Source: Macrostomum lignano
Lineage: Eukaryota
Direction: 5' to 3'
Assembly (NCBI GenBank): GCA_002269645.1
Contig: NIVC01001330.1
Coordinates: forward strand, 248,001-312,000
Length of the DNA stretch: 64,000 bases
The translations under genes were made by a program, and so were the position numbers. The notes under the pieces were generated by a model. It saw nothing but the letters and a program-made list of their open reading frames with translations, searched no databases and had not been told where the DNA came from. Of the stretch, positions 30,201 through 64,000 are shown one piece after another; the stretch's first letter is position 1, and every line of letters starts with the position of its first letter.

Positions 30201-33200
30201 TAGCAATGCCGAGTCAATAACTGATAATTAAATTAATGAGGCGCCTCTTTGACAGTCAGTCAGCAGGGAATCAGTCTGCTCAAATGCAAACTCTACAAGG
30301 TGGAGAATATTTAGAATTCATAGCTAGCTGCAAATGTGACATATTAGCCTACTGACACTAGCAGTATGGAAATATTTAATCTGTTTTTAATTTACACCAA
30401 GTATACGCATCACATCTACCTGGATGTTCCAAACCTAGATCCAACGCCCAAGACATGAGACCCCATTCAGACCCCATACTAGAGATCCCATCCAGATCTC
30501 ATACTAGATATTCCATCTAGATCCTACAACAGAGATCCCATACTAGAGATCCCATCCAGATCCCATACTAGAGATCCCATCCAGATCTCATACTAGAGAT
30601 CCTATCCAGATCCCATCCAGATCCTACAACAGAGATCCCATCCAGATCCCATACTAGAGATCCCATCCAGATCCTATACTGGAGATCCCATCCAGATCCT
30701 ATACTGGAGATCCCATCCAGATCCCATACTAGAGATCCCATACTAGATATTCCATCCAGATCCTATACACTAGAGATCCCACCCAGATCCCACACTAGAG
30801 ACCCCACACTCACTCCATATCTAAATCCTGTCCCGCGCTGGCCCACAGCGAGTCTGAGTCGTCTCCAATGGCCACCCCGTAAGCCTCGAGCAGCGAGTCC
30901 ATCTCCAAGGTGCTGAGAACCATGTCAACGTCTCTCTCGCCATCAGCATCGGCGAAGTCGTCTCTGCTGGCCTCCAGCTTCTTGTCGAAGCAGGGCATAA
31001 CAGTGAGGTGGTACACCGAGACGGCCTGGGTGTCCCCGTCCTCCTCGCTTCGCTTCCATTTGGCCGGGAGCCACCGCTTGACCAGCGCGCCCGATACCTA
31101 TGGGGTGGAGAGCGGTTGCGCTAAGAGATCCCATCATCCCACACTCCAAACCCACAGATCCCACACTCCAAATCAACAGATCCCACACTCCAAATCCACA
31201 GATCCCACACTCCAAACCCACAGATCCCACACTCCAAACCCACAGATCCCACACTCCAAATCAACAGATCCCACACTCCAAATCCACAGATCCCACACTC
31301 CAAACCCACAGATTCCACACTCCAAAGCCAAAGATCCCACACTCCAAACCCACAGATCCTATTATCCGACACTCCAAACCCACAGATCCCACACTCCAAA
31401 CCCACAGATCCCACACTCCAAACCCACAGATCCCACACTCCAAACCCACAGATCCCGCACTCCAAGCACACAGATCCCAAACTCTAAACCCACAGATCCC
31501 ACACTCAAAACCTAAAGATCCCACACTGCATTTTCTGATCCCACACTGCATTTTCTGATCTGACACTGCATTTTCTGATCCCACACTGCATTCCCAGATC
31601 ACACACTGCATTCCCAGATCCCACACTGCATTCCCAGTTCCCACACTGCATTCCCAGTTCCCACACTGCATTCCCAGATCCCACACTCCATTCCCAGATC
31701 CCACACTGCATTCTCAAATCCCACACTACATTCCCAGATCCCACACTGCATTCCCAGATCCCACACTCCAAACCCACAGATCCTATTATCCGACACTCCA
31801 AACCCACAGATCCCACACTCCAAACCCACAGATCCCACACTCCAAACCCACAGATCCCACACTCCAAACCCACAGATCCCGCACTCCAAGCACACAGATC
31901 CCAAACTCTAAACCCACAGATCCCACACTCAAAACCTAAAGATCCCACACTGCATTTTCTGATCCCACACTGCATTTTCTGATCTGACACTGCATTTTCT
32001 GATCCCACACTGCATTCCCAGATCACACACTGCATTCCCAGATCCCACACTGCATTCCCAGTTCCCACACTGCATTCCCAGTTCCCACACTGCATTCCCA
32101 GATCCCACACTCCATTCCCAGATCCCACACTGCATTCTCAAATCCCACACTACATTCCCAGATCCCACACTGCATTCCCAGATCCCACACTCCATTCCCA
32201 GATCCCACACTCCATTCTCAGATCCCACACTCCATTCCCAGATCACACACAGCATTCACAGATCCCACACTGCATTCCCAGATCCCACACTCCATTCCCA
32301 GATTCCAAACTCCATTCTCAGATCCCACACTCCATTCCCAGGTCCCACATACTATTCCCACATCCCACACTACACATCCAGCTGATCCCATACTCCATAT
32401 AACAATTTGCCACACTAAATTACAAGCGGACATATCTTTCATTATCAGACTCCAGACTAAAGACTAAAGAAGACCAACCTGTTGCGGAGAGCGAACCCTT
32501 GACACCAGAGGCAGCAGTGCCGGGTGAGTCTTCTCAGCATAGCAGATCCAACCGGGACACGCCGAGGCCAGCATTGGCAGGCGCTTCTCAAGACCATCAT
32601 CTCCCCGCCGCTGCCACCTGTCACAGAACTCCTCAGCCATCTCAGCCAGGCACAAGCTCCTAGCAGACGAGCTGTTCAGCACAGTCCTGGCGCCGAGACG
32701 GAGTTTTAAAAATGCGGCTAGTCGGCGAAAGCATTCGGCGAAACCGCCATTGACTTGGTGACGGGCAGCCAGACTTGAGCAGGACTGAGGCGAGATGGTC
32801 ACCACCAAAGCTTTGGAAGCTGCTGGCAGGGTAGGCAGAACCGACAACAACGCTGTGTGGCTTTGTTGCTCAACCAGCACAGCCTCCGCTGAGGTCACGC
32901 AACCACTGCAGGCGAGACAATCAGCCAGGGTGATCTCAGCCTTCGGCAGCTGGTACTCCTTGCCATCCTCAGTGACCCCCGTGTACTGCCCATCCTCTCC
33001 GATGCGGATGCGGGCAGTGCGACCCACGCTCTTGTCAACTCTGACTGGCTTAATGCATTCCTGCGATGGTGGGGTTTAGTGGGTTGGTGATTTGAGATAG
33101 GAGGGCCATGGGCACCTTGGTGTATTTGAATTGACATTGTCACACAACTGACAAGAAGCATTATGACCTATTTTGCCAACTCTCATTGAGGAAGCACTCA

Positions 33201-35790: not shown

Positions 35791-38700
35791 ATGCTGGCTT
35801 CTCAAGGCATTGAGAAGGAGCAGAACTCGGCGGTCTCTGTCGACGAACTGCTGGTGGATTTCGAAAAGACTTTAATCGACACTCTGAAGGCGCCAGAAAA
35901 GAATGTGATCGGGAACCTGACCGGGATGGTGGACGGCTACCTCAGTCGTAAAGATAGCGCCGCTATCTGTCCTCGTATCTGCAAGATCATTGAGCGAAGA
36001 TTAAATGAAGTAAGTTTCTATATTTTTTTGTTTAGGCCACCAAGTGAATCAAAACTATCTTAGTTGTAGGCCTAATTCTTTTGCTCGAACTCAAACCTAT
36101 TATTGCAAAGGCGCAAATCGTTGTTACTCTGTTGTTCGTAAAGTTTTATTTCTGATTGGCATAACTGACGTTTCGGCTCTTTCTTCATGCTTCAATTCAG
36201 TGTTAAACCACAAACGATTTTAGTAGAGTTGTGTACTTTCTGACTACTTACTTTCAGTAGCAGTAGCGAGCATTTAGCACGTATTTTTGCCTAATTTTTT
36301 CTTAACCTAAGGCTAAACATCCCACTCTCTCACTAATTTCAGGTGCAAGTTAACAGGAAGCTGGCTCACCTCTACTTGATGGATTCCATTGTAAAGAACT
36401 TCAAGACCTCCCAATACCCGAAGCTGTTCGGCGCCAACCTGGTGCAGAACTTCGCCAACGTGTTTCGCAAAGGCGACGAAAAGATGCGCAAGAAATTGTT
36501 CGAGCTGCGAAAAACTTGGCCAGAGCATTTCAGCCAGTCGGTGTTGCATAGCTTGGACCTAGCGGTGCGGGAGATTGATCCCGCTTGGCCCATCCTGGCC
36601 CCTCAGCCGCCGGAGCAGCAGCAGCAGAATGGCAGCAATGTGGTTGGTGTTGCACGCAAGCGCTGCCACTCACCGGATTCTCCAGACTCCACCACCAGCC
36701 AGCAGCAGCAGCAGCAGCATGGGTTAGGCGAGTCCAGCAGTCGAAAGCGATTGTCGGTGGCCAACCCGCAGGCCGCAGCCAGCGGCGGCGGCGACTTTGT
36801 CATCGACACGGTCGGCGACCCGAAAGCGGCGGAGTCTGTTGCTACGGGAGTCCGACAGGGCAGGCACAGCCAGCCGCAGCAGCAGGCCGCTAATGATGTG
36901 GACATGCGCAGAGGCTGGAGCCAGTACAGGCGGAGGCACAGCGACCAGTTTGCTGCGGCAGCTTCTGATGTTGATATGCGCCAATTCCAGACAGTAAGTT
37001 GCACCCCAAAGCTGCGCGAGGGTGCCGTCCACCGGCTCAGGTCTGCACACACAAAGTATATCGGTACCTGCATTTTGTCTTTCTTATCCTCTAGTCAGAG
37101 CTTTAGCGTTTCCAATTCAAGTCTTGAAGTCCTCGCAAAAATTTGCATTCATTTATTTATATATTATAATTTTTACACCAAAGTCAACAAAATACAAGCA
37201 AAGCAAATGATGTGCATCTTATTGTTTGCAGATTACTGCTATTATTGTACTTTTTTTTATTTTTGACTCTAGTGAATGAAAAGAAAATACAAAAAAGCGT
37301 GTCTGATGTTCCTTACAGTTCCTACTTCCATTGTTAACCCGTAAACTGTTTGAATAACGCTTCACTTTTCATTATACTGTTCCGTGTTTCTGTTTCATAT
37401 TTGTCTGCTTGAAGAATTAAAAAAAAGCAAATTCGACTGACCAAACTGAATTAATAACTACATGTGCATGGAACAGAGGATGTGTCACTGCCAACAACGA
37501 TATTAAAAAATGCACAATAATAATAAAGCATGCAGTGACAGTGTCGGCACTCTAATTCTGTTCCACTGTTTGCCTTTGTTTTTACTTCTAAACTGTTCAG
37601 AAGAGACATTTAAATACTGTAGATATATATCAGTGTCAAAGCTATTTAGCTAAAGGATTAATGTTTTAAAGTTCAAGACTGAACTAGATAAAATTTTGTT
37701 GCTTTTTTCATTCTAATCGATTATTGTATTATATTGAATCGTTGATAATCATTTTACCTGTCTACTTACTTTGTACTGTATGCAACTGTTACTCTGAGAC
37801 ACACTGTGCTCCTAAGAAGTTCACTAACTTGTCTGAATCTCTGTTTTTTTCTATCTGTCGTTTAATCGTTAAAATGTTATTGATTTCATGGCGTTCGAAA
37901 TTGGAATCGTTCTTAAGTTTAGGATCGAGATTCGAATCTTTTACGACAATTAGTAACTTTATTATCACCGATGGGTCTCGTTCTTAGACTCCACAAAGTT
38001 AAGTCTCAATTCAGGGATTCGTCCTCAGTCTAGGTTTTATTTAGGAAACTAAAATTTAGGATTAATTTAGAACTTACCAAAAAGGCTTTGACTCATTAGA
38101 AAGATTAGGGTTTAGGAATCGCCTTTAGTGTTTCGCTCATTTAGGAAGCTAAAATTAGGTTATAAGAATCGTCTTTAGTGTTCCACTCCATAGGAAACTA
38201 AAATTAGGTTATAAGAATCGTCTTTAGTGTTCCACTCCATAGGAAACTAAAATTAGGATTTAAGAATCGCGCTTAGTGTTCCACTCCATAGGAAACTAAA
38301 ATTAGGATTTAGGAGAAATCGCCCTTAGTGTTTCATTCCATAGGAAACTAAAATTAGGATTTAGGAGAAATCGCCCTTAGTGTTTCATTCCATAGGAAAC
38401 TAAAATTAGGATTTAGGAGAAATCGCCCTTAGTGTTTCATTCATTAAGTAATTAAAATTAAAAAATTAGGAAATCAAAGACTAGGGGCGATTCCTTAGCT
38501 AGGATTTAGGAATCACCCTTAGTCTTTGACTCCTTTATAGGAAACTAAAACTAGGATTTAGGAATCTTCCTTATTTAGGAACCTCCCCTAATTATTAGGA
38601 AACTAAAATTAGGCTTTAGGAATCGCCCTCAGTCTTGAATTACTAGGAAAATAAAATTAGAAATCACTCCCTCAGTTTCGGGATGATTTGGAAACTAAAC

Positions 38701-41700
38701 ATTTAATAAAAATCTGCCCTACTTTGTTTCGAGCTGATGAAGTTTGTATCTAATTCTCTGTTTTTTTAAACTGAATGGCCATCCACTTGAGTCTTTGTCA
38801 CAAAACCGCACACTTCACACCGAAGGCCCCCAGCCCTCTCCCTTGTATCGCCGCTCACGATTTCAATCTCCCGTCAACTCTCGCGCAGGAGGCCGCCAGC
38901 GGACCGGCCGAAAGTCGAGAGATGATGGAGCAACAGGCTGCGCAAATCCGGCGGATGCTGGCGGCTGGCGGACTCAAACCCGAGATGCGTCAGCAGTTAA
39001 CTGGCTGTTTGAGAACACTCGAGGCCGAGTTCGCTGCCGCAGCCCCTGTTGCTCAACAGAAACCCTGCCAGCAATCGACTTCTTCTTCTAGCAGCAGCAG
39101 TAGTCAGATTCCTCAGCATGTTGACAGTCTGCTTGACGCCCTGCTGGGGCAACAGGCTTCTGACAGTTGCCAGCCGCTGCCGCCACCGCAATCGATGCCT
39201 CCGCCAGGCCGTCAGCACCAGCAGAGTCGCGTCCGGCCTGAGCCAGTCTTCAAAGACCTGTTTCGCTGGCGGGTCAATGTGCCCGACATGCCGGAGTTTC
39301 CTCAGATTGGCTGCGATCCGAGGCTGCTCGCTCCGCTAAGAGACCGCTTTGAGGCAACTAAAAATATCCAGATTGATGGAGAGATTCGCCAGGTGAGGGA
39401 GGAGCTAAACCTGGGCTGATGCAAATTTAAACCATATGGCTAGCGCCTTTTAAAATTTTATTTTCGAGAATAACAACACAGAGAATCTCCCCTTTGACTA
39501 CCACAAGAGTTGGATCTTTAACTACCACAAGAATCGCCTCTTTGATTACCTTAAGAATCGCTCTTAGACTACCTTAAGAATCGCCCCTAGACTACCACAA
39601 AAATCGCCCCTAGACTACCACAAGAATCGCCCTAGACTACCACAAGAATCGCCCCTAGACTACCACAAGAATCGCCCCTAGACTACCACAAGAATCGCTC
39701 CTAGACTACCTAAAGAATCGCCTTCAAACGACAAGAATCCAATCCAAGTGTCTAGCAATCGCCCATGGACTCATACTTCACAGCCCTATCCCTTGAGCTA
39801 TCCCTACACCCCATCTCACCCCTCCAGGTGGTGCTGGACCGCATCCAGCCTCTGCTCATACTGGACGAGCAGCCGCGAGCCCTTCGCTTCAAAATGCCGC
39901 CAGGCGGCAGGATTCTGCTCAGAGTGGACTCCCATCAGCCTGTTGAGCTGCGCATCAACTCCTGCACCAAGGTGCTGTTTAACCTTCGGCCGCACATGGT
40001 CTGTCTTGGCGGCCCATTTCACGAGCTCATTGTGCACGGCCGGCCGTTCAATGTGCAGTTCAACGACCCCAACCCGAAGACCATCACTCTCGGACACGGC
40101 GCCAGCGGCCAGTTCTCTGTCCGCCTACAGGCCCTGCTGTCCAATGGCCGGCCGGTCACTCCATCCTTGGACATCTGTCCGACTATTCCCAGATCTGTGC
40201 TGCGCTGGGCTACCGACGGCGCATTCGGCAGTCCGCAGCATTTGCACCTGCCGCCTTTGAATCCTGAGGTGCAGATGCAGCAGAAGGCCCAGCAGCAGCA
40301 GCAGCAACAACAGCAGGTGCCTCAGGGACCGCCGCAGCCACCGCAGCAGCCTCCGGAAGCACCTCAGCAGCCGCAGCAGAAGCCAGCAACAGTAGTGGAA
40401 CTATTCGAAAATCTGGTCAAATTTGGCATCATCAAGAAGACAGACGCTGCGAATGCTCCGGAGCCCGATCTGACCAGCTTTGAAGGCATCGACAGGCCGC
40501 TGCCAATGATCACTAAGCGTCTGTACGAGGGCTACCAGTGCCCGCAGTGCGGTCTGCGCTTCAACAGCGAAGAGGCCCCGGAGTGCCGCGATCATCTCGA
40601 CTGGCACTATCAGCGTCGCGCCGCCCTGTTCGGCGTCACCATTCGGTCTAGAAATTGGTTTCCGCACTGGACTGCCCTCGTCAAAGGCGAGGACCCCGTT
40701 GAGGCCGCCGCCGCTGCTGCCGCCGCCGCTGCAGCCGCTGCCGCCGCTGCGAAAGCCGCCGCCGCCGCGGCCAATAAAAACCGATCGGCCAAGTCTGGCG
40801 GCAGGGGGGCCGCTGCCGGTGGCTCGCTCGACTTTATGGCGAGAAAGGTGGGTTGGGAACGAGGATTAGAGAGATCGACGACTGCATTGGATTCGAGGAT
40901 TAAGGATTAGGCTTAAAGGATTAAGGATTAGGATTCAAAGATTAGGAATCAAGGATTAAGGATTGGTATTCGAGGATTAAGAATTAGGATTCGAGGATTA
41001 AGAATTAGGATTCGAGGATTAAGGATTGGGATTCGAGGATTAAGGATTGGGATTCGAGGATTAAGGATTAGGATTCGAGGATTACGGATTAGAATTCGAG
41101 GATTAAGGATTAGGATTCGAGGATTAAGGATTAGGATTCGAGGATTAAGAATTAGGATTCGAGGATTAAGAATTAGGATTCGAGGATTAATGATTGTCAT
41201 TGATTGGGATTCGAGGATTAAGGATTGGGATTCGAGGATTAAGGATTAGGATTCGAGGATTACGGATTAGAATTCGAGGATTAGGAATCGAGGATTAAGG
41301 ATTAGGATTCGAGGATTAAAGATTGGGATTTGAAGATTAAGGATTAGGATTCGAGGATTAGGAATCCAGGATTAAGTTTAGGATTTAGGAATCGAGGATC
41401 AAGGATTAAGATTCGAGGATTAGGAATCGAGGATTAAGGATAAAGATTCGAGGATTAGGAATCGAGGATTAAGGATAAAGATTCGAGGATTAGGAATCGA
41501 GGATTAAGGATTAAGATTCGAGGATTAGGAATCGAGGATCAAGGATTAAGATTCGAGGATTAGGAATCGAGGATTAAGGATAAAGATTCGAGGATTAGGA
41601 ATCGAGGATTAAGGATAAAGATTCGAGGATTAGGAATCGAGGATTAAGGATAAAGATTCGAGGATTAGGAATCGAGAATTAAGGATTGGGATTCGAGAAT

Positions 41701-42930
41701 TAATGTATTCTGGTTTGGAATCTGTCTAAAGATGCTTCAGTTATAAATGACACAGAGACTTCTTCTGTCTGGTTTTAATGGTTTATAACGGAGATTGGAT
41801 CATCTTTTAGATCTAGAGTATATAAACCAATATTGAAGAGTATTTGAAATCTGTCAGTTCCTGAACTCATTTGAGATTAGTAACAATCTGCATCAAACTA
41901 AAATGGATCTGTAATGTATCATACTCAACACCTGCAGGATCAGGCACAGCAGCACCACCACCAGCAGCACCAGCAAGTCAGTCGAGTCTCCGCCTATCCG
42001 GAGCCCGAGCGTAACGTATGCGGCGTCTGCTTCGAGACATTCGACAACCGTTGGGACGACGAGGCCGAAGACTGGATGCTGCTGGACTGCGTGCGGCTAC
42101 CCGACGGCGGGATTTATCATCCCGTGTGCGCCGAGGATGCTGGCAAGGTGCGCGTAGATGAGAATGATGACGATAATAAAGCGTCCGAGCTGCTCACCAA
42201 CCCGGCGGCCGCTCTGATGAACATCCTGCAGCACAGTCGGCCGCAGTCCTCTGCCAGCGTTGAAGCCATGGACGCTGCGGACGCTGAGAAGCCCACTGAG
42301 CTTAAGCTGGAACCTGGTGATGTCGCACCAGCTGCCTCTGAGGCTGCCGCCGAGTTCAAAGTCGAACCCCAGGATCCCGAATCTGAGGCTGATCACGGAC
42401 CGGCTGATGACGATGCTCATACACCGGTTCATGACGATGCTCATACACCGGCTGATGACGGTGGTCATAAACCGGCTGGTGACGATGCTCATACACCGGT
42501 TCATGACGATGCTCATACACCGGCTAATGACGATGCTCATACACCGGCTGATGACGATGGTCATGCACCAACTCATGACAATGCTCATACACCGGCTGAT
42601 GACGATGGTCATGCACCAACTAGTGAGGATGCTCATAAACCAACTGGTGACGATGCTCATACACCGGCTGATGACGGTAGTCATGAACCAACTGGTGACG
42701 ATGCTCATACACCGGCTGATGACGATAGTCATAAACCAACTAGTGACGATGCTCATACACCGGCTGATGACGATGGTCATACACCGGCTAATGACGATGG
42801 TCATAAATCAACTTATGTCAATGCTCATACACCGGATAATGACGATGGTCATGCACCAACTAGTGAAGATGCTCATAAACTGGCTGATGACGATGCTCAT
42901 GGACCCGGTGATCCAGACGCAAGCAATTAA
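35791..42930 (+). CDS. PCF11: Pre-mRNA cleavage complex II protein PCF11 (CID domain, two Zn fingers), 5 exons
   Basis: Exons 35791-36009, 36343-36993, 38889-39392, 39828-40847, 41938-42930 (all phase 0, GT-AG). CID motif KLAHLYLMDSIVKN...LFELRKTW...IDPAWP; ZnF1 LYEGYQCPQCGLRF...HLDWHY...SRNWF; ZnF2 CGVCFETF...WDDEAEDW...IYHPVC. Confidence 0.92.
38040..38700. repeat. Degenerate ~50-bp minisatellite, PCF11 intron 2
   Basis: Core aggaaactaaaattaggatt...aatcg..cttagtgt. Confidence 0.8.
39485..39730. repeat. 23-bp minisatellite (gcccctagactaccacaagaatc), PCF11 intron 3
   Basis: Direct tandem repeats. Confidence 0.85.
40870..41700. repeat. ggatta-based 21-bp/35-bp minisatellite, PCF11 intron 4
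   Basis: Unit gaggattaaggattaggattc. Confidence 0.9.
42403..42906 (+). repeat. Coding 24-bp repeat: 21 Asp/His-rich octapeptides (consensus xDDDAHTP) in the PCF11 last exon
   Basis: In frame within ORF 41914-42930, downstream of ZnF2. Confidence 0.85.
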
Positions 42931-44414
42931 GCCGTCAACTCTGCCTTCCGCTTGTGGCTGCAGCATCGAAATGCGTTTTAATTTGGAGATTAACACAAAC
43001 TCCTGCAAATGTTTTAAAATTCTAAAAATAGAATCGTTAATAAATCCTGCACAGCTGGTAGCTTTCATCGTATATCTTGTTTTATTTTTCAATCATACCA
43101 ACATGCTATTGATGTTAATAATAGTAGTATCACTCAGCTATCATTCACTTTGCCTTCTTCGTTTGCCTGTGTGTCAACTTGAAAAAAACAAAGATTAAAA
43201 AAGTTGCATTATTAAATCTGTGTTCTTGCTGTTGTGAAAATTTGTCCTAAATCTGACCTAATTAATAATAATAAATTAGCCTTAATGCATATAAAGCCTG
43301 CATTTGTCATGAGTAAATAATTCCTTGCTTATAAGATAAAAATCCTATTTCATATATAATACGTAGTTCATCATACTTTAGTAAATTTGCAAGCTTCTCA
43401 TTTCAAGACAAAAAGAGTTTGAGAATAAAAAATTGTTAATATTCCTGCCTTCTGTCAGCTTCTTTCTCAGACAAATTATATTCATGTTCAATAATAATTA
43501 CGGTTTTTGTTTTAAATAGATAAATTTCCAAGGAATCAGTGCTACAGGAAGCAGCACTCGTCCTTTCTAGGCTGCCCTCATTACACAGTTATTTGAATTC
43601 TGTAATTTAATTATAAAATGTTATTTAGAAATATTTTCCCGTTGTTTTGGTGACTATTTGTTTATTTAAATCTATTATTATTTTTAATCACTCGATGTTA
43701 AATAGCCAACGTGTGTCATCTGTGCGTCATGTGTAAACTATTTCGGCTGTACTCTTGGAATAGTTAATAAACTGGACAAACAAACAAAAAATGATTTCTG
43801 TGTTGTTTATTTATTATTCAATTTGCGCTAAGTAAAATGTCTTTTGAAATATCTTACCTTAAGCTTTTTTACACTTGGTGCGATTACTACTTATATTGCT
43901 ACTTAAAGTAGACAAATTAGGACACTTAAGTACATGAAATCGAAGCCAAATAATCAGTGGAATTGCAAAATCTTACAAAACAGCATGGAGTGAAGAATTT
44001 GATACAAAGGCGATTCTGTGTTCTAGTAATTAAATTCTCTCAAATTGATTAAAATGATTGTCATCCGAAGTGATTATAAGACTCGATCTATCGCATCTCA
44101 TCAATTTGAGATTCAATTATCCGTAGAAGTGGGATTTTCGTCATAGATCCATCCAAATTAGGTTTTTTTCAACCTCCCCGTGGCGACTATTTCAACTAAT
44201 TATATTCTGATTAAAAATTGCTAATTAGGATTATGATACAGCTGCACCTGTGTTTGATCAAAATTTTTATGAAGACTTAAATTTTTTCCAAACCAGAGCT
44301 ACTTGCAGTTTATTAGCCAGTTTTAATAATGATTCTATTGATGTTTGTGTACCAGCAGTATCAGATTACTGATTCCTGTTTACCATTTTATAGTAGAACA
44401 TCAAATATCCTGTC

Positions 44415-45460
<1,046 letters not shown>

Positions 45461-46444
45461 TGTCTGTCTTCTGTCTTATTGTCTTCCTTAGTGTCGACGT
45501 CTATTTTAGTGTGTCTTATAGCTTCTGTCTTTCTAAGAACCTAAAGAAGTGTCTATTTGAGCAGAAACAAAAGAAACCGTGTGTACTGCAATAATTTGTC
45601 ATTTTTTGTCTCCCACGTTATCAGTGCTCAATTATCAGTGCTCAGTGATCAGTGCTCAGTGATCCCTGGGTTTCAATTCTGGCACAAATAGATATGAGAC
45701 TGGCTGCAGGCAGATGCGATATGTATATGAAAAACAAAATAAACAGCCACTCGGACAGGGAACAGAGTTTTTTCGCCCGACCGCAGTTCTTCCTCTCCGT
45801 GTGATGCAGCTCGCAGCTTCCCAACCCGGCCTCCCCGCGCAGGCTGGGGATCAGTCACGCCAACTTTATGCTCGAGCTGCTCCCAAGCCGGCAGCCAGCA
45901 TCCGTCAGACACAGCAGGCGATGGGGGAAGGTGGTAATCCTCACCTGCCCGTGTAATTACTGCTTCTCAGAATGTCCTCGCCAACTTGGACAGGGCATGG
46001 CGATGGGATCTCAACTCTCCGATGCTTACACCTGAGCTGACCGGGCTGCAAACTGACTGGTTGAGCAGCAGGGATGGACTCGAAACATCTCCTCTCCTGG
46101 CCCAGTGCTCAGCCTCCTCTCTCTCTTTCTTTGAGCAAGTCCGATGCGATATGAGACTCGAAGAGTGGGCTGGAAGCAGTCTGCAAGTCTTGAGCCCCGG
46201 ACACGGCAGGCCTGTCAGTCCCGTTCGCCACGGCAATTCATGAACAGAGAAGTGGAAGCAATCACTGCTGATTGACTGACTGGCCGCGCACTGCAACTCG
46301 ATTAATTAGCAGGTAAAATAAAATATCTGCTGTCCTGGCCTGTGACTAGACTTATCTACTTGTACGAGCTGCACTCAACTATCAAGTCAGTCAGCGGCCC
46401 TAAACTATACAGAGCTGTTCTCCTCACCAATTTACATTGTATCT

Positions 46445-53659: not shown

Positions 53660-55850
<2,191 letters not shown>

Positions 55851-56118
55851 AGTAGTATAGAAAAAGACGCTTCTAGACCCAGAGCACTTTTTTAATGACC
55901 GTTTTAAGGGTCTAGAGGGGGGACACGGGGGGTAAATAAAAAAACACATCTAAACACCATTAATACATCTAATCACCCATAATCACCCCTAACAATAAAA
56001 ATCACTTCCCAACACTTCCAAACACTCCCCAACACCCCCCTCGCGTCCCCCCTCTTAAGACCTTAAAAACGGCCATTAAAATAAGGTCTGATCTGTAAGC
56101 GTCTTTTTCTATACTACT
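55851..56118. repeat. Terminal imperfect palindrome (~85-bp arms) at the Polinton left end
   Basis: agtagtatagaaaaagacgct (55851-55871) is an exact reverse complement of 56098-56118; similarity extends to ~55935 / ~56035. Confidence 0.9.
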
Positions 56119-56175
56119 ACTCTATAACCCCTTGCCCGCGCCGCAGGCGCGAAGGGTCTTTTTCTGTTACTAAAA

Positions 56176-56490
56176 ATGACCCGAGTTTACACCTTTTCTG
56201 TTAGTGATACTTTTGAGACTGTTGCTAAAAATGCAGAGATAATAAAACAACATATTTTGAATGGAATAATTGATGAAGTTTATTTAAAATATGACGACAA
56301 GCATGACCTAAAGCTTTATCCATTAGAGCTAGATGAGATGTATGATTTAGAACAAGAGGGTGAGTTAATATTTCAACTTGGAGATTATTTAAATTCGGAT
56401 GATTGGGAGGTTAGATCAACAGATTCCGAATCAACAAATAGTTCATATGAAACCAGTGATTCAGAGAATGAAAGTGAAATTTTTATGTGA
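56176..56490 (+). CDS. Polinton hypothetical acidic protein, 104 aa
   Basis: Open ORF with AAAAATG start; very Asp/Glu-rich C-terminus. Confidence 0.6.
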   Translation: MTRVYTFSVSDTFETVAKNAEIIKQHILNGIIDEVYLKYDDKHDLKLYPLELDEMYDLEQEGELIFQLGDYLNSDDWEVRSTDSESTNSSYETSDSENESEIFM

Positions 56491-56506
56491 AAAAAATATT
56501 TAAAAA

Positions 56507-56731
56507 ATGAACTATTATTCTATAACAGAAACGACGTTTATTATGAAAAATATATATAAAAAAATGAAGGTAAATTATTCCTACATCGGAAATGTTCCAA
56601 TTAATGAACTTAATGAAAATTTAAGTTTGATAACAGTTGAACAAATGTCAATAATAATATTAGTAACAATAATAGTAATAATATTGTTTTTGTTTGTAAT
56701 AAAAAATTTACTACCATGTTGTCTTAAGTAA
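56507..56731 (+). CDS. Polinton small single-pass membrane protein, 74 aa
   Basis: AAAAAATG start; hydrophobic SIIILVTIIVIILFLFVI followed by K...PCCLK. Confidence 0.55.
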   Translation: MNYYSITETTFIMKNIYKKMKVNYSYIGNVPINELNENLSLITVEQMSIIILVTIIVIILFLFVIKNLLPCCLK

Positions 56732-56741
56732 CTGTTTGAAC

Positions 56742-58349
56742 TTAGTTCGCAGACATTATCTGGTTCTCATAAAAAGAACCCAATATTTCTTCACCATCCT
56801 TATCAGCAATTATATAGGTTGTAGGATTTGTATTTAAAACTTTACTGATGGTAAATTTCTCACTTATTTTCCAATATCCTTTTCTTCCCTTTTCAAACTT
56901 ATCTTTCCATTTATAGATATAAACAGAATCACCAACCTTAAAACCTTTAGTTTTCTTTTTTTCAAAATCTCCAAAAGTAACCCTAACATTTTCAGGATTG
57001 TTATAAGCTTGTTGAGGAGTCATCTTTATCGCCGAATGATATGAATTGTTATAATCTTTCACTACCTCTGGTAATATTTTTACCCATTTTTGGTTACCAT
57101 TAAGACTAAACTGAAACCATAATTTCTTACCTAAAGTTCTATTAAATCTTTCTATTAATGCGTTTTTACTCTCTCCATAAATAGAATAAATTTTATTAAT
57201 ATACTCCCCATTCGCGTCCTTTTTCCTTTCTTGTCCTTTTTCAAAATGATACAATTTATACATGTGAGGATTGTAAAATTCTTTTCCTTCGTCAACACAC
57301 AACCTTTCACTTTTTTCTCCAAGACTTCTAAAAGCAGCAGCAACCTCCTCTCCCTTTTTGGATTTTAAAGGAACAGCCCACGCGTATCGAGTAAAACCAT
57401 CTAATATGGTTAAGATATATTTATATCCTCTTTCGTTCGGCATCGACATTAAATCAGCATACCAAATTTCATTCTTTTTGAAGTTCATGATTTTTCTATA
57501 AAATTTAGGTTTTCGATATTCTTTATGAAGAATCTTTGCCTCATCAGAACTTAACCCGCCGCCACTTAACAACAAACACTCAACACAATTATTTCCATGT
57601 TGATTATAATTAATTCCCAAACCAAATTTAACTTTAGACTGCAAGATCTTTTTAACCATCCACCTAGTTAATTTTTGACCTACCGATAATCCCTGCAAGT
57701 TATCTAATCCTTGAATCATTTTTTGATCGGCTTCATGTTTTAATCTTAATGCTTCCTCGGGTGTGTTCTTATCAGCATCTCTGTATGCTAAGTCATGATA
57801 GTATGCTAACCAATCAATTCCATTTATGGGAATTGAATCGGCTTTTGGGGTGTCATCAGGATTTAATCTCAAATCTAAGCGAGTGCCGGGTAGTTTACCC
57901 TCAATCTTTCGAAAGAGGCTGGAGCACACCTTAAGCGGCGATAATTACCGCCCATCTCCGTCTGCTCTCTGAACCTTCTCCTTATATTTAAAATACTTAG
58001 GAGCTTGGCTGCGCATTGCCACCGTGTCTTCAAGCTTTTTACCATCGAACCATAGGTTCGCGGACGAAGTCCGATTGGGAAGAGGAGTTACCTCTGTTCC
58101 TTCAAAAGATTTCTCAATTGAAGTGGTACTTGAAGCTGTATGACGGGTTTCACGCAATTTGGAGATGTCGCCACAAATAGTGACTAGCAAGGACATTGCC
58201 TTCCTCACTCAGGCCACGGGTTAACCTGTGAAGTTCATTGATGGTAGGTGTAGCTCACCCGTATACCTCCCAGTAGTAAATATTGGTGGTAAGCTTGTTA
58301 ATCCTTTTTGAACATCTAAAAATCCTCCTTCAAATACTATTTGGTTCAT
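56742..58349 (-). CDS. PLA2X (parvovirus-type phospholipase A2)-retroviral-like integrase fusion; exons 58349-58224 and 57890-56742 joined by a group I intron; 424 aa spliced
   Basis: Exon 1 gives MNQIVFEGGFLDV...GELHLPSMNFTG and exon 2 gives PGTRLDLRL...PINGIDWLAYYHDLAY...EAD (PLA2 Ca loop, HD and D). These are followed by the rve DDE core WYADL / CVDEGKEF / IERFNRT and YNNSYHSAIKMTP. Confidence 0.88.
57891..58223 (-). ncRNA. Group I self-splicing intron (IC1-like, 333 nt, no internal ORF, apparent omega-A)
   Basis: P1 exon CAGGU / GCCUG with U.G at the 5' splice site; P3 CAUCUCC(58167-61)/GGAGAUG(57959-53); P4 UGCGUG/UGCGCA; P5a with A-rich bulge; P5b GAAA tetraloop; P6a CUCCU/AGGAG; P7 G-A(bulge)-GAGCA(57969-63)/UGCUCC(57926-21); P8; J8/7 UUAAGGUG; P9 GAAA; P9.0 AG/CU. 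Removal restores NFTG|PGT in frame. Confidence 0.9.
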
Positions 58350-58833
58350 TTTTAATGTTTAAAAAACATGTTTCTATCAATTTAATAATTTCTAAATATT
58401 GGTCACCATATAAAAAATTTAAAGCAAATTCCCCAGTTAACAAGGTAACTCCATTATCAAATACTTTTTGTACGGGGTTTTTAGTAGTATTATTAATGCA
58501 AATATAATATAAATCAAATTCGGGATTAACATATTTAAATTCTAATAACTTTTGAATATTTCTAAATCGACTTGATGAATTATCTGTGTTATCAGAAGAT
58601 TTTAACTCTAACGCAACTTTTCTTTCTGTATGAATTAAATCAATTTTATTTACTTTTTCAAAACCAAAATGTTTAATAGCTAATAATTCATAAAGAGATC
58701 CAAGTCTCATTTGTATTGTTTTAATACGGTTTGCAATTATTAATTCATCTTGAAATATTTTATTTAGTATTCTGTCAGAACCAACTTTATCATAAATAGG
58801 CTTACAAAGGTGGTCTTTTATTGTTTCATCCAT
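58330..58833 (-). CDS. PD-(D/E)xK restriction-endonuclease-like protein, 167 aa
   Basis: ATAAAATG start at 58833; motif Q-x-RLG-x-LYE...IDLIHTERKVALELKS-x2-NT (D...ExK). Its stop overlaps the PLA2X ATG by 20 nt. Family assignment is by motif only. Confidence 0.6.
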   Translation of the reverse strand: MDETIKDHLCKPIYDKVGSDRILNKIFQDELIIANRIKTIQMRLGSLYELLAIKHFGFEKVNKIDLIHTERKVALELKSSDNTDNSSSRFRNIQKLLEFKYVNPEFDLYYICINNTTKNPVQKVFDNGVTLLTGEFALNFLYGDQYLEIIKLIETCFLNIKNEPNSI

Positions 58834-58861
58834 TTTATAAAAAAATAAATTTAACAATTAA

Positions 58862-59533
58862 TTAAACTCCAGTATGTCCAGCAGCTTTCGCAGCAGCTAA
58901 AACAAGTTTTCGCGGTGTTTTAAATCCATCACCAACAGCTGGTTTGTTATTTATAGAATTAACAATCCATTTATACAAGCTGGTATTTTTAACAGCTCCT
59001 CCTAACTCATCATAAAAAATTCTAGCACTTATTAATTCATCCCTAGTATATAAATCGGGGTTAAATTTTACCCTAGGGTTCGTAATAATATTAAATGCTC
59101 CGCCCAATTCTCTATATAGTTCATTTCGATCTTTAACAACGTTACCAATTCGATAATTACCACCACCTAAATCTGTCACAGCAATACTAGTTGGTGCAGG
59201 TCTCGGATATTGTTCAACTCCACCCCTAATCTCTTCACGTCTAATTTCTGCAACTCTAAATATTGCTTGATCAGTCTCATAAGCAGGCGGCTCATCCAAA
59301 ATTTCATCCTCTTTTGGCTCCGTATTTTTAGCAATTTTTTCCAGAAGATCTTTATCTGTTTTTTCTAGTTCACTAATTTTCCCAGTAATAGGATTAACAA
59401 AAGGAGCAGCAAATCTTTCACCCGCTAATTGTATTCCTAACTTTCTTTTTTGTAAATTCCTAACAAAATCAGAATATCTTTGCTTCTCTTTATAAATCGC
59501 TAACTCTCCATCAACGTCCATAAATTGACTCAT
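58862..59533 (-). CDS. Polinton hypothetical (possible virion core) protein, 223 aa
   Basis: Intact ORF with AAAAAATG start; C-terminal LAAAKAAGHTGV recalls the A-x2-AGNTG motif of Polinton core proteins. Confidence 0.6.
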   Translation of the reverse strand: MSQFMDVDGELAIYKEKQRYSDFVRNLQKRKLGIQLAGERFAAPFVNPITGKISELEKTDKDLLEKIAKNTEPKEDEILDEPPAYETDQAIFRVAEIRREEIRGGVEQYPRPAPTSIAVTDLGGGNYRIGNVVKDRNELYRELGGAFNIITNPRVKFNPDLYTRDELISARIFYDELGGAVKNTSLYKWIVNSINNKPAVGDGFKTPRKLVLAAAKAAGHTGV

Positions 59534-59567
59534 TTTTTAACATAAAAAACTTTTTTAACTTAAAAAA

Positions 59568-61090
59568 ATGGCTGAAACAAAAACTATGTGGAGTGATAAA
59601 TTTCATTTCAAAAAGCACCGACAGTATATTAATGAGGTCAGAGCAAGAGATTTAAATTATACCCTACCAACAAGTGATAATTCAAATAACTTTACTACTG
59701 GAACGGTAACTTTTGACATCGGCGCAACCAACACTATATTGGATATGAAAAATGCGTTTTTCCGCGTTAGATGGTTGTATACTAGAAATGATGGAACTGC
59801 TCTTGCAGCCGGAGATATCGCAGATCGATCCGGAATAATAATAGAAAATGATTGGTTTTATAAATGTTTTTCCCAAGCAAAACTGTTAATGGTGCTGAGG
59901 TTGAGACATCATCAAACCCCGCAGAGATTAATGGAGTTTTGAAACATTTAAATTATACTTATTTATCAAAACAAGTTGGTGATAATGTTGGGTGGATGCC
60001 GGATAAAGGTAACGGTCAAGCAGTAGTTTTCCCTAATGTACAAAACGCAGCCGGTGCAGATACTGCAGCGCTAATTGTTTACCTTAATACAAACATAGTT
60101 CCAGTTGTAACCACTATGACTAATACAAAAGATATTAATACTGGTTTTATAGATCGTCAGAATAAATTCCCAGTCGCGGTTTTAACCACAGCAACAGCAT
60201 ATGAGCAGGACTTTTCAATCTTTCCACTATTTGGGTTTTCTCACCAAATCGGGTATGGAAAGGATTAAAATTTGGGATACAGTTGCAAATATCTGGTGGA
60301 TATCAGCCTAGGATACTTTATGGAACCTCAATTTCAACCGATATAGCAGTTCGTATAGATTCAATTCAATTAGTCGTACCAACTATTGAGGTAACAGCCC
60401 CACTTTTAAAACACATCGATAATCAGTTAACGCATGATCAGGAAATATTTTATTTGAATCGTCGACATTTTATGCGAACCATTAATAATAACCAGGATTC
60501 ATTCCAGTGGCAAATACTGACATCAAAACGTCGGGTGAGATATATTTTTGTTTGGTTTAAGATAACAAATAGAAGGAGTAAAAGAGCAAATGGGATTTAT
60601 ATTGGCTTCAATCCGGTGCGCATAGCAGAACAAGCAGCCACCGCAACAGACAATGCGGCTGCAGCTATTAACGAGTTTAATGTTCAGAATATCCGCCTGC
60701 AGGTTGATGATCAATATTATCCGGTTAAAGACCCCCTAAATTTAAATATAGCAAATAATAATGTTAATGATTTTATAAAATATTATCAAGATTATGCTAA
60801 AAATGAAGCGTATGCCGTCCCTCAGTACACACACAGAGTTTCTAAACATTCATCCAGTGGTTGTTTATGATCTAACGGCACAGAAAGAAAACGTAGCCAA
60901 TATTGGACTTAATTATATGTTAGAGATTAATAAAACCGGTAATCAGGCACTTGACGCCACGTATTGTTTCTAGAGGAATATATGTCAATTGCTAAAGCTG
61001 ATGCACGATTGTTCGGGACGCACTTTAGCTCGCACTGCAAAGCATCAACACCTGTAAAAATGGTGCAGGTCTCGACCGTCGCGCTATTTA
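59568..61090 (+). pseudogene. Major capsid protein (double jelly-roll, Polinton-type), frameshifted
   Basis: Three consecutive ORF pieces (59568-59942, 59864-60268, 60283-60870+) with beta-rich motifs VTFDI...LDMKNAFFRV, RVRYIFVWF and FNVQNIRLQVDDQYYP-x2-PLNLN; 3' end approximate. Confidence 0.7.
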
Positions 61091-61105
61091 AATTATTTCT
61101 TTAAA

Positions 61106-61866
61106 ATGGTAAAGGCAAAACACGATAAGATATTCCAAATGATCCTTTTCTTTGTTTAGTAATTGGTGGTCGGGTAAAGGAAAAACACACTTGTTTATCG
61201 ATTTATTAACAACGATGGAATGCTAGACTATAATAATTTAATAATATTATACTAACAAACCTAGAATAAAATATTATGAATTTCTTAAACATGGATTAAA
61301 AAACAAATTAAAAAAAGATGTCTTGTTTAGAATGTTAAGAGCATATGAGCAATATGAGGATGATGACGAACCGCGATTTAATCTAGCAGACATTGAGGAT
61401 TTATGTAAAACAATGGCACAACAGCCAGAAAACATCACCGATCGCCCCGAAGGGTCGCGGACTTCGTCCGATCGCCCAACTGTATAGAGTATCAACCCGA
61501 TTAGCCTATGATCAAATTCCAAACATGATAAAACACTAATTATTTTTGATGATTGTATTAATGACGGTGATCAAGAATTGCAAAAGGAAATTTTGTTAGT
61601 GTGTAGAGGAGATGGAATTGGAGCTTTTTATCTTACTCAATCCTTTAGAGAATTAGAATCGATTATAAAAAAGAATGCTAGCTTGTTGTGTAATGTTTGA
61701 TTTAGATAACTATGATCTACAAAATATTCACGCTAGATTTAATCCCGGGATTGGATGCAAAACCATTTAAAAGTATGTGTAAAAAAATTTGGGATGATAG
61801 CCAATACAAACATATTTATATCAATCCGAGGTTAGAAAGGAAAAATAGAATTTAAAAAATTTGATA
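61106..61866 (+). pseudogene. A32/FtsK-like genome-packaging ATPase, frameshifted
   Basis: Walker A region LVIGGxGKGKTHL (broken by an indel), Walker B LIIFDD and YLTQS motif. Confidence 0.8.
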
Positions 61867-61940
61867 AAAGACGATGAGGAAGAAGAATGATCGTCCCATA
61901 GGTCGCGTACCTCTCGGTACGTTAATTTCCCACTATAAAA

Positions 61941-62722
61941 ATGACTACAAATTTAAATACTATAAAACACATTGGTAGATCGAACTAATTCAAAATTTAG
62001 TACAACATTACAGTTATAATGACAACCAGCGAGCAACGGATTCAATTGCGCGATCCATTACAATTGATCAAAGCCTAAGTTATCAAATAGGTTTAATACT
62101 ATTTTCGGTTTTCAACATGCCTCAATTAATTAATGCAACAAATAATCAATTTAGATATTTAAGATTCCGGAGCCAATTGGAACAACATTTAGCGCTTAAC
62201 CCAGGAGCGTATAGCTATACTGATTTGAATGCTTATATAGAAGGAGAATTAACAACTAATGGTGATTGGTAGCAGGAGCAATTGTTATAGGTGTTGATTT
62301 ACCGTCTGGCAGATTCACACTATCACTAGGATCCGGATATCAGGTTGATTTCACAATTGCAAATTCACTCAGAACCATACTTGGATTTAATTCCCGAATA
62401 GTTACCACATCAAGCACCGGTGATACAGTTGGAAATATAGAGGGTGGAGTAAATACAATTAATATAACAACCGACATATCAAACGGTGGTTATATAACAG
62501 ACGATAACGGAGTTTTGGTTCAACGTGGAATTATTTATTCAATCCCATTTCTTGCTGTTCCAATTGGAGAGAAAATGATTGTATCACCTCAAACCCAATA
62601 TATTACCCATTAAATCAATATAATGTTCAATCAATTTATATTAGGATTGTAGATGAAAGCGATAGATTAATAAGTTTTGGTGGGCATCAATAACATAATT
62701 TTTACGTATAAAACAGGTTTAA
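61941..62722 (+). pseudogene. Minor capsid protein (penton), frameshifted
   Basis: Pieces with NATNNQFRY, PGAYSY, LRTILGF, NTINITTDI, IIYSIP, ending LRIKQV*; typical Polinton penton pattern. Confidence 0.7.
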
Positions 62723-62915
62723 TCGTATGTAAAAATGGGTAATAATAATATAATTTAACTAAAAAAACAATCAGAAAAAGTTAAAAAAGCTGAAGATAAT
62801 TACGAACTAGAACTAGCAAAATTAAGGCAGTTACAAGCTGATAAAATAAGAAAGGAATTGTTAAAACCCACACCTACGAAACTAACTAAAACCAAGAGTT
62901 TTTCAGGAACATAAA

Positions 62916-63351
62916 ATGACCATGACGTGGGATGATTTTAAACAAAGATATGGAACGACACAACAAGCAATATCGAATTAACAAATTGGGCGAGGCAGTT
63001 AAAAATAAAACCATTCAGATGTGTTATGCGAGATGAGATAAAGACTTACCACAATATGGATCTTTCATTGTTAATATTGAAACAACAAAAGAAAATGGTG
63101 TTCATTGGTCAGCAGTTTATTCAAAACCAAAACTTGTTTATTTTTGATTCATACGCGCTTCCTCCGTTACAGGAAATAAAAGACAAATTTAATCATACTA
63201 AAAATCGTTTATGTGGAGATCATCACGAACAATTTCAAACTTTGATAAAAGTTATTGCGGGCAAGCGGCGTTGTATTTTTTATATCGACTTTCGAATGAA
63301 GCTCGTGTAAACCCCGAAGTATTTAAGACTATTTTAGACTCTATAAAATAG
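62916..63351 (+). pseudogene. Adenain-like cysteine protease, frameshifted
   Basis: Catalytic motifs across frames: GVHW (His), FDSYALPP (Asp) and Q...YCGQAALYFL (Cys). Confidence 0.8.
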
Positions 63352-63361
63352 ACAGTAAAAA

Positions 63362-64000
63362 ATGTTATTTTCTGGAACACCCTCATGGAACGGAACAACA
63401 AGTAGTCTGGTGGTGGCACATCTGGGGAATAAGTGTTACATTTGGAGATAATCGATATATTAATGAAGATGAAGGTTATAAAAAAAGTGAAGTTGATACT
63501 AAACTAAATTTAAAAAGAAACGTTGCAGATTCCTATACTAAAACTCAAATAGATGATTCACTAAATCTGAAACGGAACGTAGCCGATTCCTATACCAAAA
63601 CCGAAGTTGATAATTCATTAAATTTAAAACGCAATACAGCCGATTCTTATACCAAAACGAGAGTTGATAATTCATTAAATTTAAAACGCAATAACGATTC
63701 TCTTATACCAAAACCGAAGTTGATAATTCATTAAATTTGAAACGGAACGTAGCCGATTCTTTATACCAAAAACCGAAGTTGATAATGGATTAAATTTAAA
63801 AAGAGATGTAACTGATTCTTATTTCGAACTGATTCTGATTCACGTTATGTTCAAACCCCGCAAACGCGGAAACCTAGATATGAGCAACAACCGAATTATA
63901 AATGTTTCAATTACAACTAGTGATTCAGTGGTTGATAGAACTATGTCGATAATCAAAGTTGCCACTCGTTGGTAATATTAATATGAATAATTTTAAATTA
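63362..64000 (+). pseudogene. Fibre/spike-like protein with 57-bp (19-aa) coiled-coil repeats, frameshifted, partial
   Basis: ~6 repeats of YTKTEVDNSLNLKRNVADS (63480-63830) followed by LDMSNNRIINV. Confidence 0.55.

Follow-up and report, generated by a model that had tools for sequence, protein, structure and literature searches.

We analyzed a 64-kb stretch of DNA (64,000 nucleotides; hereafter the window), in which an AT-rich, virus-like element (about 33% G+C) occupies positions 56119..64000, with its left end near 56.1 kb beside a 1.3-kb satellite and a foldback, and its other end beyond the window. On the minus strand, the element carries a gene encoding a phospholipase A2-type domain (PLA2, PF08398) fused to an rve integrase, and this gene is interrupted by a 333-nt insert at 58223..57891. 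Exon 1 (58224..58349) comprises 42 codons from an ATG at 58349 and ends in NFTG; it aligns with the N-terminal part of uninterrupted homologues (for example P0001, the P numbers denoting proteins retrieved in our searches; 69% identity, E 2e-14), its last residue corresponding to the Gly just before their Pro-Gly-Thr. Exon 2 (56742..57890) starts with PGTRL and encodes the rest of the PLA2 domain, with an HD motif 31 residues after the junction, followed by the rve integrase core, and is open to its stop codon. The rve match (PF00665, E 1.6e-7) scores 31.9 bits, 0.7 below the Pfam cut-off, but homologues carry precomputed PF00665 matches and a rescanned homologue, P0002, scores 38.9 bits, above the cut-off. 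Exon 2 alone matches PF08398 at 16.9 bits against a gathering score of 23.9 (E 0.0079), covering only profile positions 21-72 because the intron cuts the domain, whereas the uninterrupted P0001 scores 33 bits over positions 2-66; the HD motif and both halves of the calcium loop are present at the locus. A search with exon 2 returned 1178 homologues, on contigs from 1 kb to 13 Mb, in which PLA2 and rve are likewise fused.

The remainder of the element appears decayed, so this copy may be inactive. A putative capsid gene (59568..60973, plus strand) lies in four overlapping reading frames, implying at least three frame changes, and its identity is only hinted at by a sub-threshold match to a double jelly-roll-like domain (PF21738, E 0.045); an A32-type packaging ATPase is likewise suggested only by a sub-threshold match (PF04665, E 0.017). 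A search with the largest open piece of the putative capsid gene found no relatives, although the length limits applied would have excluded full-length ones, and PDB sequence searches of two element ORFs returned nothing useful. The 61-64 kb region has only short frames, whereas two ORFs neighboring the PLA2-integrase gene are fully open. No polymerase, protease or confirmed capsid gene lies in the window, and the 8 kb of the element inside it, which include only one of its ends, contain no protein-primed PolB, adenain-type protease or terminal inverted repeats.

Predicted ribozyme fold and intron boundaries

A covariance-model search placed the insert within the Rfam group I intron family (RF00028, Intron_gpI), with a match at 58233..57900 on the minus strand that spans the full model (positions 1-253) at 61.1 bits against a gathering score of 50, with E 4.8e-13 for the whole window and 6.2e-14 for the element alone. 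It is the only Rfam match above threshold in the 64 kb, and a permissive Rfam scan of the element revealed no second ribozyme. The insert is richer in G+C than the flanking exons (46.8% against 36-37%) and begins with an in-frame UAA. Its MFE z-score is -2.99, and 0 of 100 shuffled sequences fold as well.

We next modeled the helices by hand and checked them base by base, yielding 104 base pairs, of which 102 are standard. The P1 hairpin (58210..58228; 7/7 pairs) joins the last five exon bases and first two intron bases to an internal guide at 58216..58210, with a U58224.G58214 wobble at the 5′ splice site and a loop at 58221..58217. P2 (58209..58202 / 58193..58186; 8/8) and P2.1 (58184..58180 / 58174..58170; 5/5) follow within 58170..58209. 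The P4-P5-P6 domain (57973..58156) includes P4 (6/6), P5 (5/5), P6, P6a and P6b, and an extended P5 region (58135..58028) in which P5a (7/7) and a 5-bp extension are followed by an AAAAG bulge (58039..58035), with four hairpins, one of them bearing a GAAA loop (58113..58110). The catalytic core (57922..57967) consists of P7 (57967..57963 / 57926..57922; 5/5), the P3 3′ strand (57959..57953), which pairs with 58167..58161 (7/7), P8 (57952..57937; 6/6) and J8/7. Within P7, G57967-C57922 aligns with the conserved G...C of the model, and pairing is maintained through two double changes relative to the Rfam consensus. At the 3′ end (57891..57921), J7/9 (57921..57919) leads into P9 (57918..57899; 6/8, with a GAAA loop), an 8-nt tail and P9.0 (A57920-U57892 and G57919-C57893; 2/2), while the first bases of exon 2 (57885..57890) can pair with the guide loop (58215..58220) to form P10 at 4 of 6 positions, with one internal mismatch.

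These boundaries imply that the intron ends in A57891 rather than in the near-universal G. Of 19 positions scanned as the 3′ boundary, this is the only one that combines P9.0 (2/2), P10 (4/6) and the right frame, and the nearest G residues (57898-57900) lack P9.0, have weak P10 support, and give a wrong frame or extra residues. Shifting the 5′ site by one base loses the U.G wobble or the encoded residues. Spliceosomal removal was also ruled out, as the GT at the 5′ side and the AG dinucleotides near the 3′ side give out-of-frame or stop-containing joins when examined by hand. A terminal guanosine is not strictly defining for group I introns, since accepted members such as the sea-anemone ND5-717 intron end in A and are nevertheless spliced in vivo (PMC8146996).

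Distribution of the intron among relatives

To ask whether removal of the insert restores an uninterrupted gene, a point that had been set beforehand as a possible refutation, we searched the two exons separately, without a joined query. In 72 of 73 homologues matched by both exons, the two matches abut with 0 residues between them, indicating that the junction of NFTG with PGTRL is the ancestral uninterrupted sequence. The 31-residue spacing from the junction to the HD motif is shared by 79 of 81 homologues.

Protein-level comparisons further indicate that the intron is optional. P0002 and P0026 begin with the same read-through of the intron's 3′ end (11 of 12 residues identical, against about 62% in the adjoining exon), whereas P0022 and P0056 begin with a start codon immediately before Pro-Gly-Thr. 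The uninterrupted alleles P0133 and P0136 are 88% and 96% identical to the interrupted P0002 and P0022, respectively, with alignments starting exactly at the junction, so that interrupted and uninterrupted alleles occur among close relatives in two clades. A region-limited protein search for other gene calls starting in the intron read-through had only four candidates and was uninformative.

The 333-nt intron contains only a chance 87-codon frame with no nuclease match. Among five hits to this frame in a library of representative proteins, however, the P0124 cluster (7 members) is an endonuclease VII/HNH-type protein (phrog_1035, E 1.5e-17) whose last ~40 residues are 67% identical to the intron's open frame across P2.1 to the P5 extension, revealing a related intron that carries a nuclease gene. 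Three of the other hits (P0121-P0123) are repeat-rich proteins matched in 5-9 stretches and were disregarded, as was the uninspected P0125. No similar intron was found in 50,697 phage records.

Discussion

Collectively, our results identify a bona fide group I intron of a mobile, optional intron family, positioned exactly between the Gly and Pro codons of the calcium-binding loop of a parvovirus-type PLA2 domain fused to the rve integrase of a Maverick/Polinton-type element, which is integrated in, or at least assembled into, a metazoan-type chromosome. We assign this reading as a whole a probability of about 0.8. The ribozyme fold and its bounds, the interrupted gene, the ancestral uninterrupted junction, the presence/absence polymorphism among close relatives and the existence of a nuclease-bearing relative of the intron all rest directly on the analyses above, whereas transcription, self-splicing with guanosine addition, and spread by homing are inferred. 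In the inferred mechanism, the gene would be transcribed with the intron, and unspliced RNA could give only a 42-residue peptide because the intron opens with UAA. The ribozyme would bind free guanosine at the G-C pair of P7 and cut after U58224, which P1 presents as a U.G wobble, whereupon P9.0 and P10 would bring the boundary after A57891 into place and exon ligation would yield the uninterrupted loop and an in-frame PLA2-integrase. Spread is inferred to occur by homing into this highly conserved site, driven by nuclease-bearing relatives, with this copy having lost the nuclease gene or never having had it. Because the terminal base is A while the guanosine-binding pair of P7 is the usual G-C, canonical second-step chemistry is not expected to be efficient, and the second step in this copy is expected to be slow, factor-dependent or absent. 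A group I intron at these bounds is nearly certain, an optional and mobile lineage spliced in its carriers is likely, and correct splicing of this very copy in vivo, for which there is no RNA evidence, is somewhat less likely than not.

The preliminary description of this locus, which reported a complete group I core with these coordinates and anatomy inside a protein gene, was accurate as an observation, although it overlooked the terminal A. Its interpretation was only partly borne out. The group I identity, the bounds, the PLA2-integrase gene of a Polinton-type element and the restored calcium-loop sequence are supported. It also described the layout as typical of nuclear IC1 introns; P2, P2.1 and a P5 extension with an A-rich bulge fit IC1, but the P5 domain is a four-hairpin junction rather than a plain P5abc, as judged without subgroup-specific models. 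The label "adintovirus" is imprecise, because the adintovirus PLA2 gene is described as PLA2 fused to a pX-like C-terminal domain (PLA2X) and separate from the integrase (PMC8502044), whereas here PLA2 is fused to rve in one reading frame. Its suggestion that no such intron was known from a Polinton or a metazoan nuclear protein gene is partly right: RF00028 introns were reported in Polinton-like viruses of protists in 2025 (PMC12220804), but we found no report for animal Maverick/Polintons or for metazoan nuclear protein genes (see also PMC3679873).

Several alternatives remain to be weighed. The most substantial, though we regard it as unlikely, is that the intron is real but not correctly removed from this copy, leaving the PLA2-integrase frame a relic from which only a 42-residue peptide, or nothing, is made. 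The terminal A with an unchanged guanosine site, the presence of G before exon 2 in another clade (P0022 and P0056 start with an NTG codon), the putative capsid gene in four frames and the short frames at 61-64 kb are consistent with this view, but the ribozyme shows no other sign of decay, both exons and two neighboring ORFs are fully open, and a terminal A is compatible with in vivo splicing elsewhere (PMC8146996). Splicing after G57900, the canonical G right behind P9, would remain in frame and add three residues (GKL) inside the calcium loop. The Rfam alignment ends on its conserved final G at this position, 9 nt upstream of A57891, with high posterior probability, the 9-nt tail is in frame without a stop, and P0002 and P0026 keep an equivalent 3-codon tail. 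We nevertheless consider this site improbable, since it has no P9.0 (0/2) and only 2/6 of P10, none of the 72 homologues has extra residues at the junction, the spacing to the HD motif would be 34 instead of 31, and G57900 can be sequestered in an extended P9.

The proposal in the preliminary description that the intron acts as a regulatory gate, making PLA2 and integrase expression depend on ribozyme splicing, has no support and is very unlikely. Unspliced RNA indeed cannot encode the protein and the intron's 3′ end is more conserved than the adjoining exon, but the latter is explained by ribozyme structure alone, and near-identical elements without the intron (P0133, P0136), a nuclease-bearing relative and an almost invariant insertion motif are typical of selfish homing introns. 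It is also improbable that the AT-rich block is an assembly chimera or contaminant, for example a Polinton-like virus of a protist joined to host DNA through the satellite repeat. The junction does lie directly beside the satellite and foldback, only one end of the element is in the window, and the closest relatives are on short ENA/Logan contigs of unknown origin. However, the same protein family sits on contigs of 0.4-13 Mb and is therefore endogenous in large eukaryotic genomes, a phospholipase domain is described as common in animal-centred group 2 Maverick-Polintons (10.64898/2026.06.19.733378), and the decayed state fits an old insertion. That the insert is a chance resemblance or an unrelated insertion is all but excluded by the full-model match, the exact restoration of a conserved motif and the same insert in diverged relatives, with nothing in its favor beyond the lack of RNA data.

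Among known systems, the group I introns of protist Polinton-like viruses (Rhodomonas lacustris, Paulinella micropora and Desmodesmus armatus; PMC12220804) belong to the same Rfam family, are similar in size (309-376 bp, against 333 nt here), lack a nuclease ORF and interrupt a protein gene of a small Polinton-type dsDNA element integrated in a eukaryotic genome, but they lie in a ~50-residue unannotated gene next to the capsid gene, whereas here the host flank is metazoan-type, the gene is the PLA2-integrase and the terminal base is A. Nuclear rDNA introns (Tetrahymena-type IC1 and IE; PMC3679873) share the overall P1-P10 architecture, with P2, P2.1, an extended P5 domain with an A-rich bulge, GAAA loops and a G-C guanosine site in P7, but interrupt rRNA genes rather than a protein-coding gene of a virus-like element. 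The hexacoral ND5-717 intron (PMC8146996, PMC6545197) is likewise a group I intron in an animal that ends in A, but is mitochondrial, obligatory and vertically inherited, with a giant P8 insertion carrying genes, whereas the present intron is small, optional and in nuclear or viral DNA. Mobile group I introns with HNH or other homing endonucleases in protein genes of phages and giant viruses (Bonocora and Shub 2009 and Stoddard 2014, as cited in PMC11296320) similarly insert in highly conserved coding motifs, show presence/absence polymorphism between near-identical alleles, and occur in nuclease-bearing and nuclease-less versions, but the carrier here is a Maverick/Polinton-type element.

These findings have practical consequences, as gene callers split or truncate the PLA2-integrase gene at this site (P0002, P0022, P0026 and P0056 all start in or just after the intron), so that catalogues of these elements under-annotate the PLA2 domain. 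The terminal A with an unchanged guanosine site also provides a second natural case with which to ask how the 3′ splice site is chosen. More tentatively, a family of mobile group I introns, some with an endonuclease VII/HNH-type homing nuclease, may circulate among Maverick/Polinton-type viruses of animals and be spliced from their mRNAs in the metazoan nucleus; these would be the first nuclear group I introns in protein-coding genes of animals, including a natural variant that ligates after a terminal A. Group I introns in eukaryotic nuclei are known only from the rDNA of protists and fungi (PMC3679873), and in animals only from the mitochondria of a few early-branching phyla (PMC8146996). 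A structurally intact one inside a protein gene of a virus-like element in an animal-type chromosome, with intron-less sister alleles and a nuclease-bearing relative, would extend the range of these ribozymes to animal DNA viruses and their endogenous copies, and would imply ribozyme splicing of a messenger RNA in a metazoan nucleus.

A group I intron model matches the insert over its full length

We first tested whether the insert is a group I intron by scanning the window against Rfam. The Intron_gpI model (RF00028) matched positions 58233..57900 on the minus strand over its whole length, scoring 61.1 bits against a gathering score of 50 (E 4.8e-13). This was the only Rfam match above threshold in the 64 kb, and a permissive scan of the surrounding element revealed no second ribozyme. 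The insert, as bounded in the preliminary description (58223..57891), is 333 nt long, opens with an in-frame UAA, and has 46.8% G+C, in contrast to 36-37% in the flanking exons. Its thermodynamic fold was better than those of all 100 shuffled sequences (z = -2.99).

Every helix named in the preliminary description was then checked base by base. P1 formed 7/7 pairs, with U58224.G58214 at the 5′ splice site, followed by P2 (8/8), P2.1 (5/5), P3 (7/7), P4 (6/6) and P5 (5/5). P5a formed 7/7 pairs plus a 5-bp extension followed by an AAAAG bulge, and four hairpins follow in the P5 extension, one of them capped by GAAA. P6, P6a and P6b were present, as were P7 (5/5), P8 (6/6) and P9 (6/8, with a GAAA loop), for a total of 104 pairs, 102 of them standard. 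Relative to the Rfam consensus, P7 retains pairing through two double changes, and G57967-C57922 aligns with the conserved G...C of the model. The observation that this insert folds as a group I intron is confirmed.

The intron interrupts the calcium-binding loop of a PLA2-integrase gene

The downstream ORF (56742..57929) carries an rve integrase core (E 1.6e-7) and a partial parvovirus-type PLA2 match that covers profile positions 21-72 only, while exon 1 comprises 42 codons from ATG 58349. The two exons were searched separately throughout. Exon 2 alone returned 1178 homologues, most of them 380-470 residues long with PF08398 and PF00665, on contigs ranging from 1 kb to 13 Mb. Of the 73 homologues matched by both exons, 72 showed direct abutment of the end of the exon 1 match and the start of the exon 2 match, with no residue between them. 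The distance from the junction to the catalytic HD motif is 31 residues in 79 of 81 uninterrupted homologues and likewise 31 in the window; because the search pattern required the residues at -1, +1 and +3, only the spacing and the other columns constitute independent evidence. The closest relative, P0001 (71% identical), is uninterrupted and reaches the Pfam threshold for PF08398 over profile positions 2-66, indicating that the intron cuts the PLA2 domain inside its calcium-binding loop, between a Gly and a Pro codon.

The predicted 3′ boundary falls after a terminal A

The boundary given in the preliminary description makes A57891 the last intron base, whereas nearly all group I introns end in G. 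We therefore scanned 19 candidate positions and found that only 57891 combines a two-pair P9.0 (A57920-U57892, G57919-C57893), a P10 with 4 of 6 positions paired against the guide loop, and the correct frame. The three G residues just behind P9 (57898-57900) have no P9.0 and at most 2 of 6 P10 positions paired. G57900 is nevertheless where the final conserved G of the Rfam model aligns, and ligation there would also be in frame, but it would add three residues that no homologue has; we consider this alternative unlikely. A terminal A with in vivo splicing is documented for the ND5-717 intron of a sea anemone, whose authors suggest that the A suppresses 3′ hydrolysis and circularisation (PMC8146996). 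Because the guanosine-site pair here is still G-C, an efficient canonical second step is not expected.

Relatives share the intron, and it is optional

Protein-level comparison indicated that the intron is present in related genes. P0002 and P0026, homologues about 60% identical to the exon 2 of the window, begin with the same read-through of the last 39 nt of the intron, in which 11 of 12 residues are identical, compared to about 62% for the adjoining exon. P0022 and P0056, from another clade, begin with a start codon immediately before Pro-Gly-Thr; in them the sequence diverges at the same junction, and the base before exon 2 is G. These automatic gene calls start inside or right after the intron, and in interrupted alleles the first exon and half of the PLA2 loop are therefore missing from public protein sets. 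The cluster of P0002 also contains the uninterrupted P0133 (88% identical), and that of P0022 the uninterrupted P0136 (96% identical), with the alignment starting exactly at the junction in both pairs. This presence/absence pattern at one conserved site is what mobile introns show.

A relative of the intron carries a nuclease gene

The intron happens to contain an 87-codon open frame, which we searched as a protein against 1.84 billion representatives. Besides three repeat-rich proteins that we take to be unrelated, and one further hit set aside uninspected, the search returned P0124, a protein whose last ~40 residues are 67% identical to the intron frame across P2.1, P3, P4, P5 and into the peripheral hairpins, of which it lacks about two in the P5 extension. 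The body of P0124 and of its six cluster mates (P0126-P0131) is an endonuclease VII/HNH-type protein (phrog_1035, E 1.5e-17), encoded on contigs of 4.8-42 kb. A close relative of this ribozyme, a sister intron in an unknown host gene, therefore carries a homing-type nuclease gene that reads into the core.

Genomic context of the interrupted gene

The host flank encodes the first coding part of an SK-type calcium-activated potassium channel (342-1337, plus strand; PF03530 E 8.7e-13; SK2 structures E 1e-15) and a Pcf11-like protein with a CID domain and a C-terminal zinc finger in large open exons (36343-42927, plus strand). This is a metazoan-type chromosome, and nothing suggests that it is human. 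Several 2-kb blocks (16001-18000, 30001-32000, 44001-46000 and 54001-56000) have extreme strand skews (AT skew +0.42 or -0.48, GC skew -0.45 or -0.38), presumably reflecting long simple repeats. The AT-rich element starts near 56.1 kb and runs off the window. It is directly abutted by a 1.3-kb host satellite (54500-55850), in which a 24-nt unit is repeated about 56 times, interspersed with long (CT)n runs. Exactly between satellite and element lies a ~268-bp foldback (55851-56118; arms 55851-55877 / 56092-56118, 93% complementary; inner arms 55914-55932 / 56037-56055, 89%), with a far sub-threshold miRNA-precursor-like Rfam match (RF04210, 33 bits against 135). This foldback could be the terminal structure of the element or a separate small inverted-repeat insertion.

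Within the element, the PLA2-integrase exons and two upstream ORFs are open. A 175-residue ORF just upstream of exon 1 (58330-58857, minus strand) overlaps its start and has a weak Eco47II restriction-endonuclease-like match (PF09553, E 4.9e-4, below the Pfam cut-off), raising the possibility of a nuclease accessory gene. The putative capsid gene lies in four overlapping frames, which means at least three frame changes, and capsid and packaging-ATPase identities are only sub-threshold hints. In the decayed part of the element, a 57-nt unit repeated about 5.5 times (63489-63801, plus strand) encodes 19-residue repeats that match phrog_5004 (E 1.2e-10, three stretches) and, weakly, a tail-fibre family, and looks like a piece of a fibre-type gene. 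A phospholipase domain is described as common in animal-centred group 2 Maverick-Polintons (10.64898/2026.06.19.733378). The adintovirus PLA2 gene, by contrast, is described as PLA2 fused to a pX-like domain (PMC8502044), so the label "adintovirus" used in the preliminary description is not precise for a PLA2-rve fusion.

Discussion

Group I introns matching RF00028 were reported in 2025 in Polinton-like viruses of three protist groups and described there as restricted to those groups (PMC12220804), and a 2013 review states that all known nuclear group I introns are in rDNA (PMC3679873). Literature searches for group I introns together with Polinton, Maverick, adintovirus or nuclear protein-coding genes found no report in animal elements, although most subscription journals fell outside their coverage, so this absence is not proof. 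The intron itself is of an established type; what is unreported is its setting.

The interpretation offered in the preliminary description was only partly supported: the identity of the intron and its bounds held, but its proposed role as a regulatory gate is not needed, as near-identical elements lack the intron and conservation of its 3′ end follows from ribozyme structure. Spliceosomal removal cannot restore the frame. That this copy is a relic that is not spliced remains a real possibility, though less likely than not, and an assembly chimera is unlikely. The modelled fold, the interrupted gene, the presence/absence pattern and the nuclease-bearing relative are shown by sequence comparison, whereas splicing activity, use of the terminal A and spread by homing are inferred.

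Together, these results are best explained by an ordinary selfish group I intron that homes into an almost invariant coding motif. In this view, the intron must be spliced out for the PLA2-integrase to be made, and is represented in this window by a nuclease-less copy with a terminal A.
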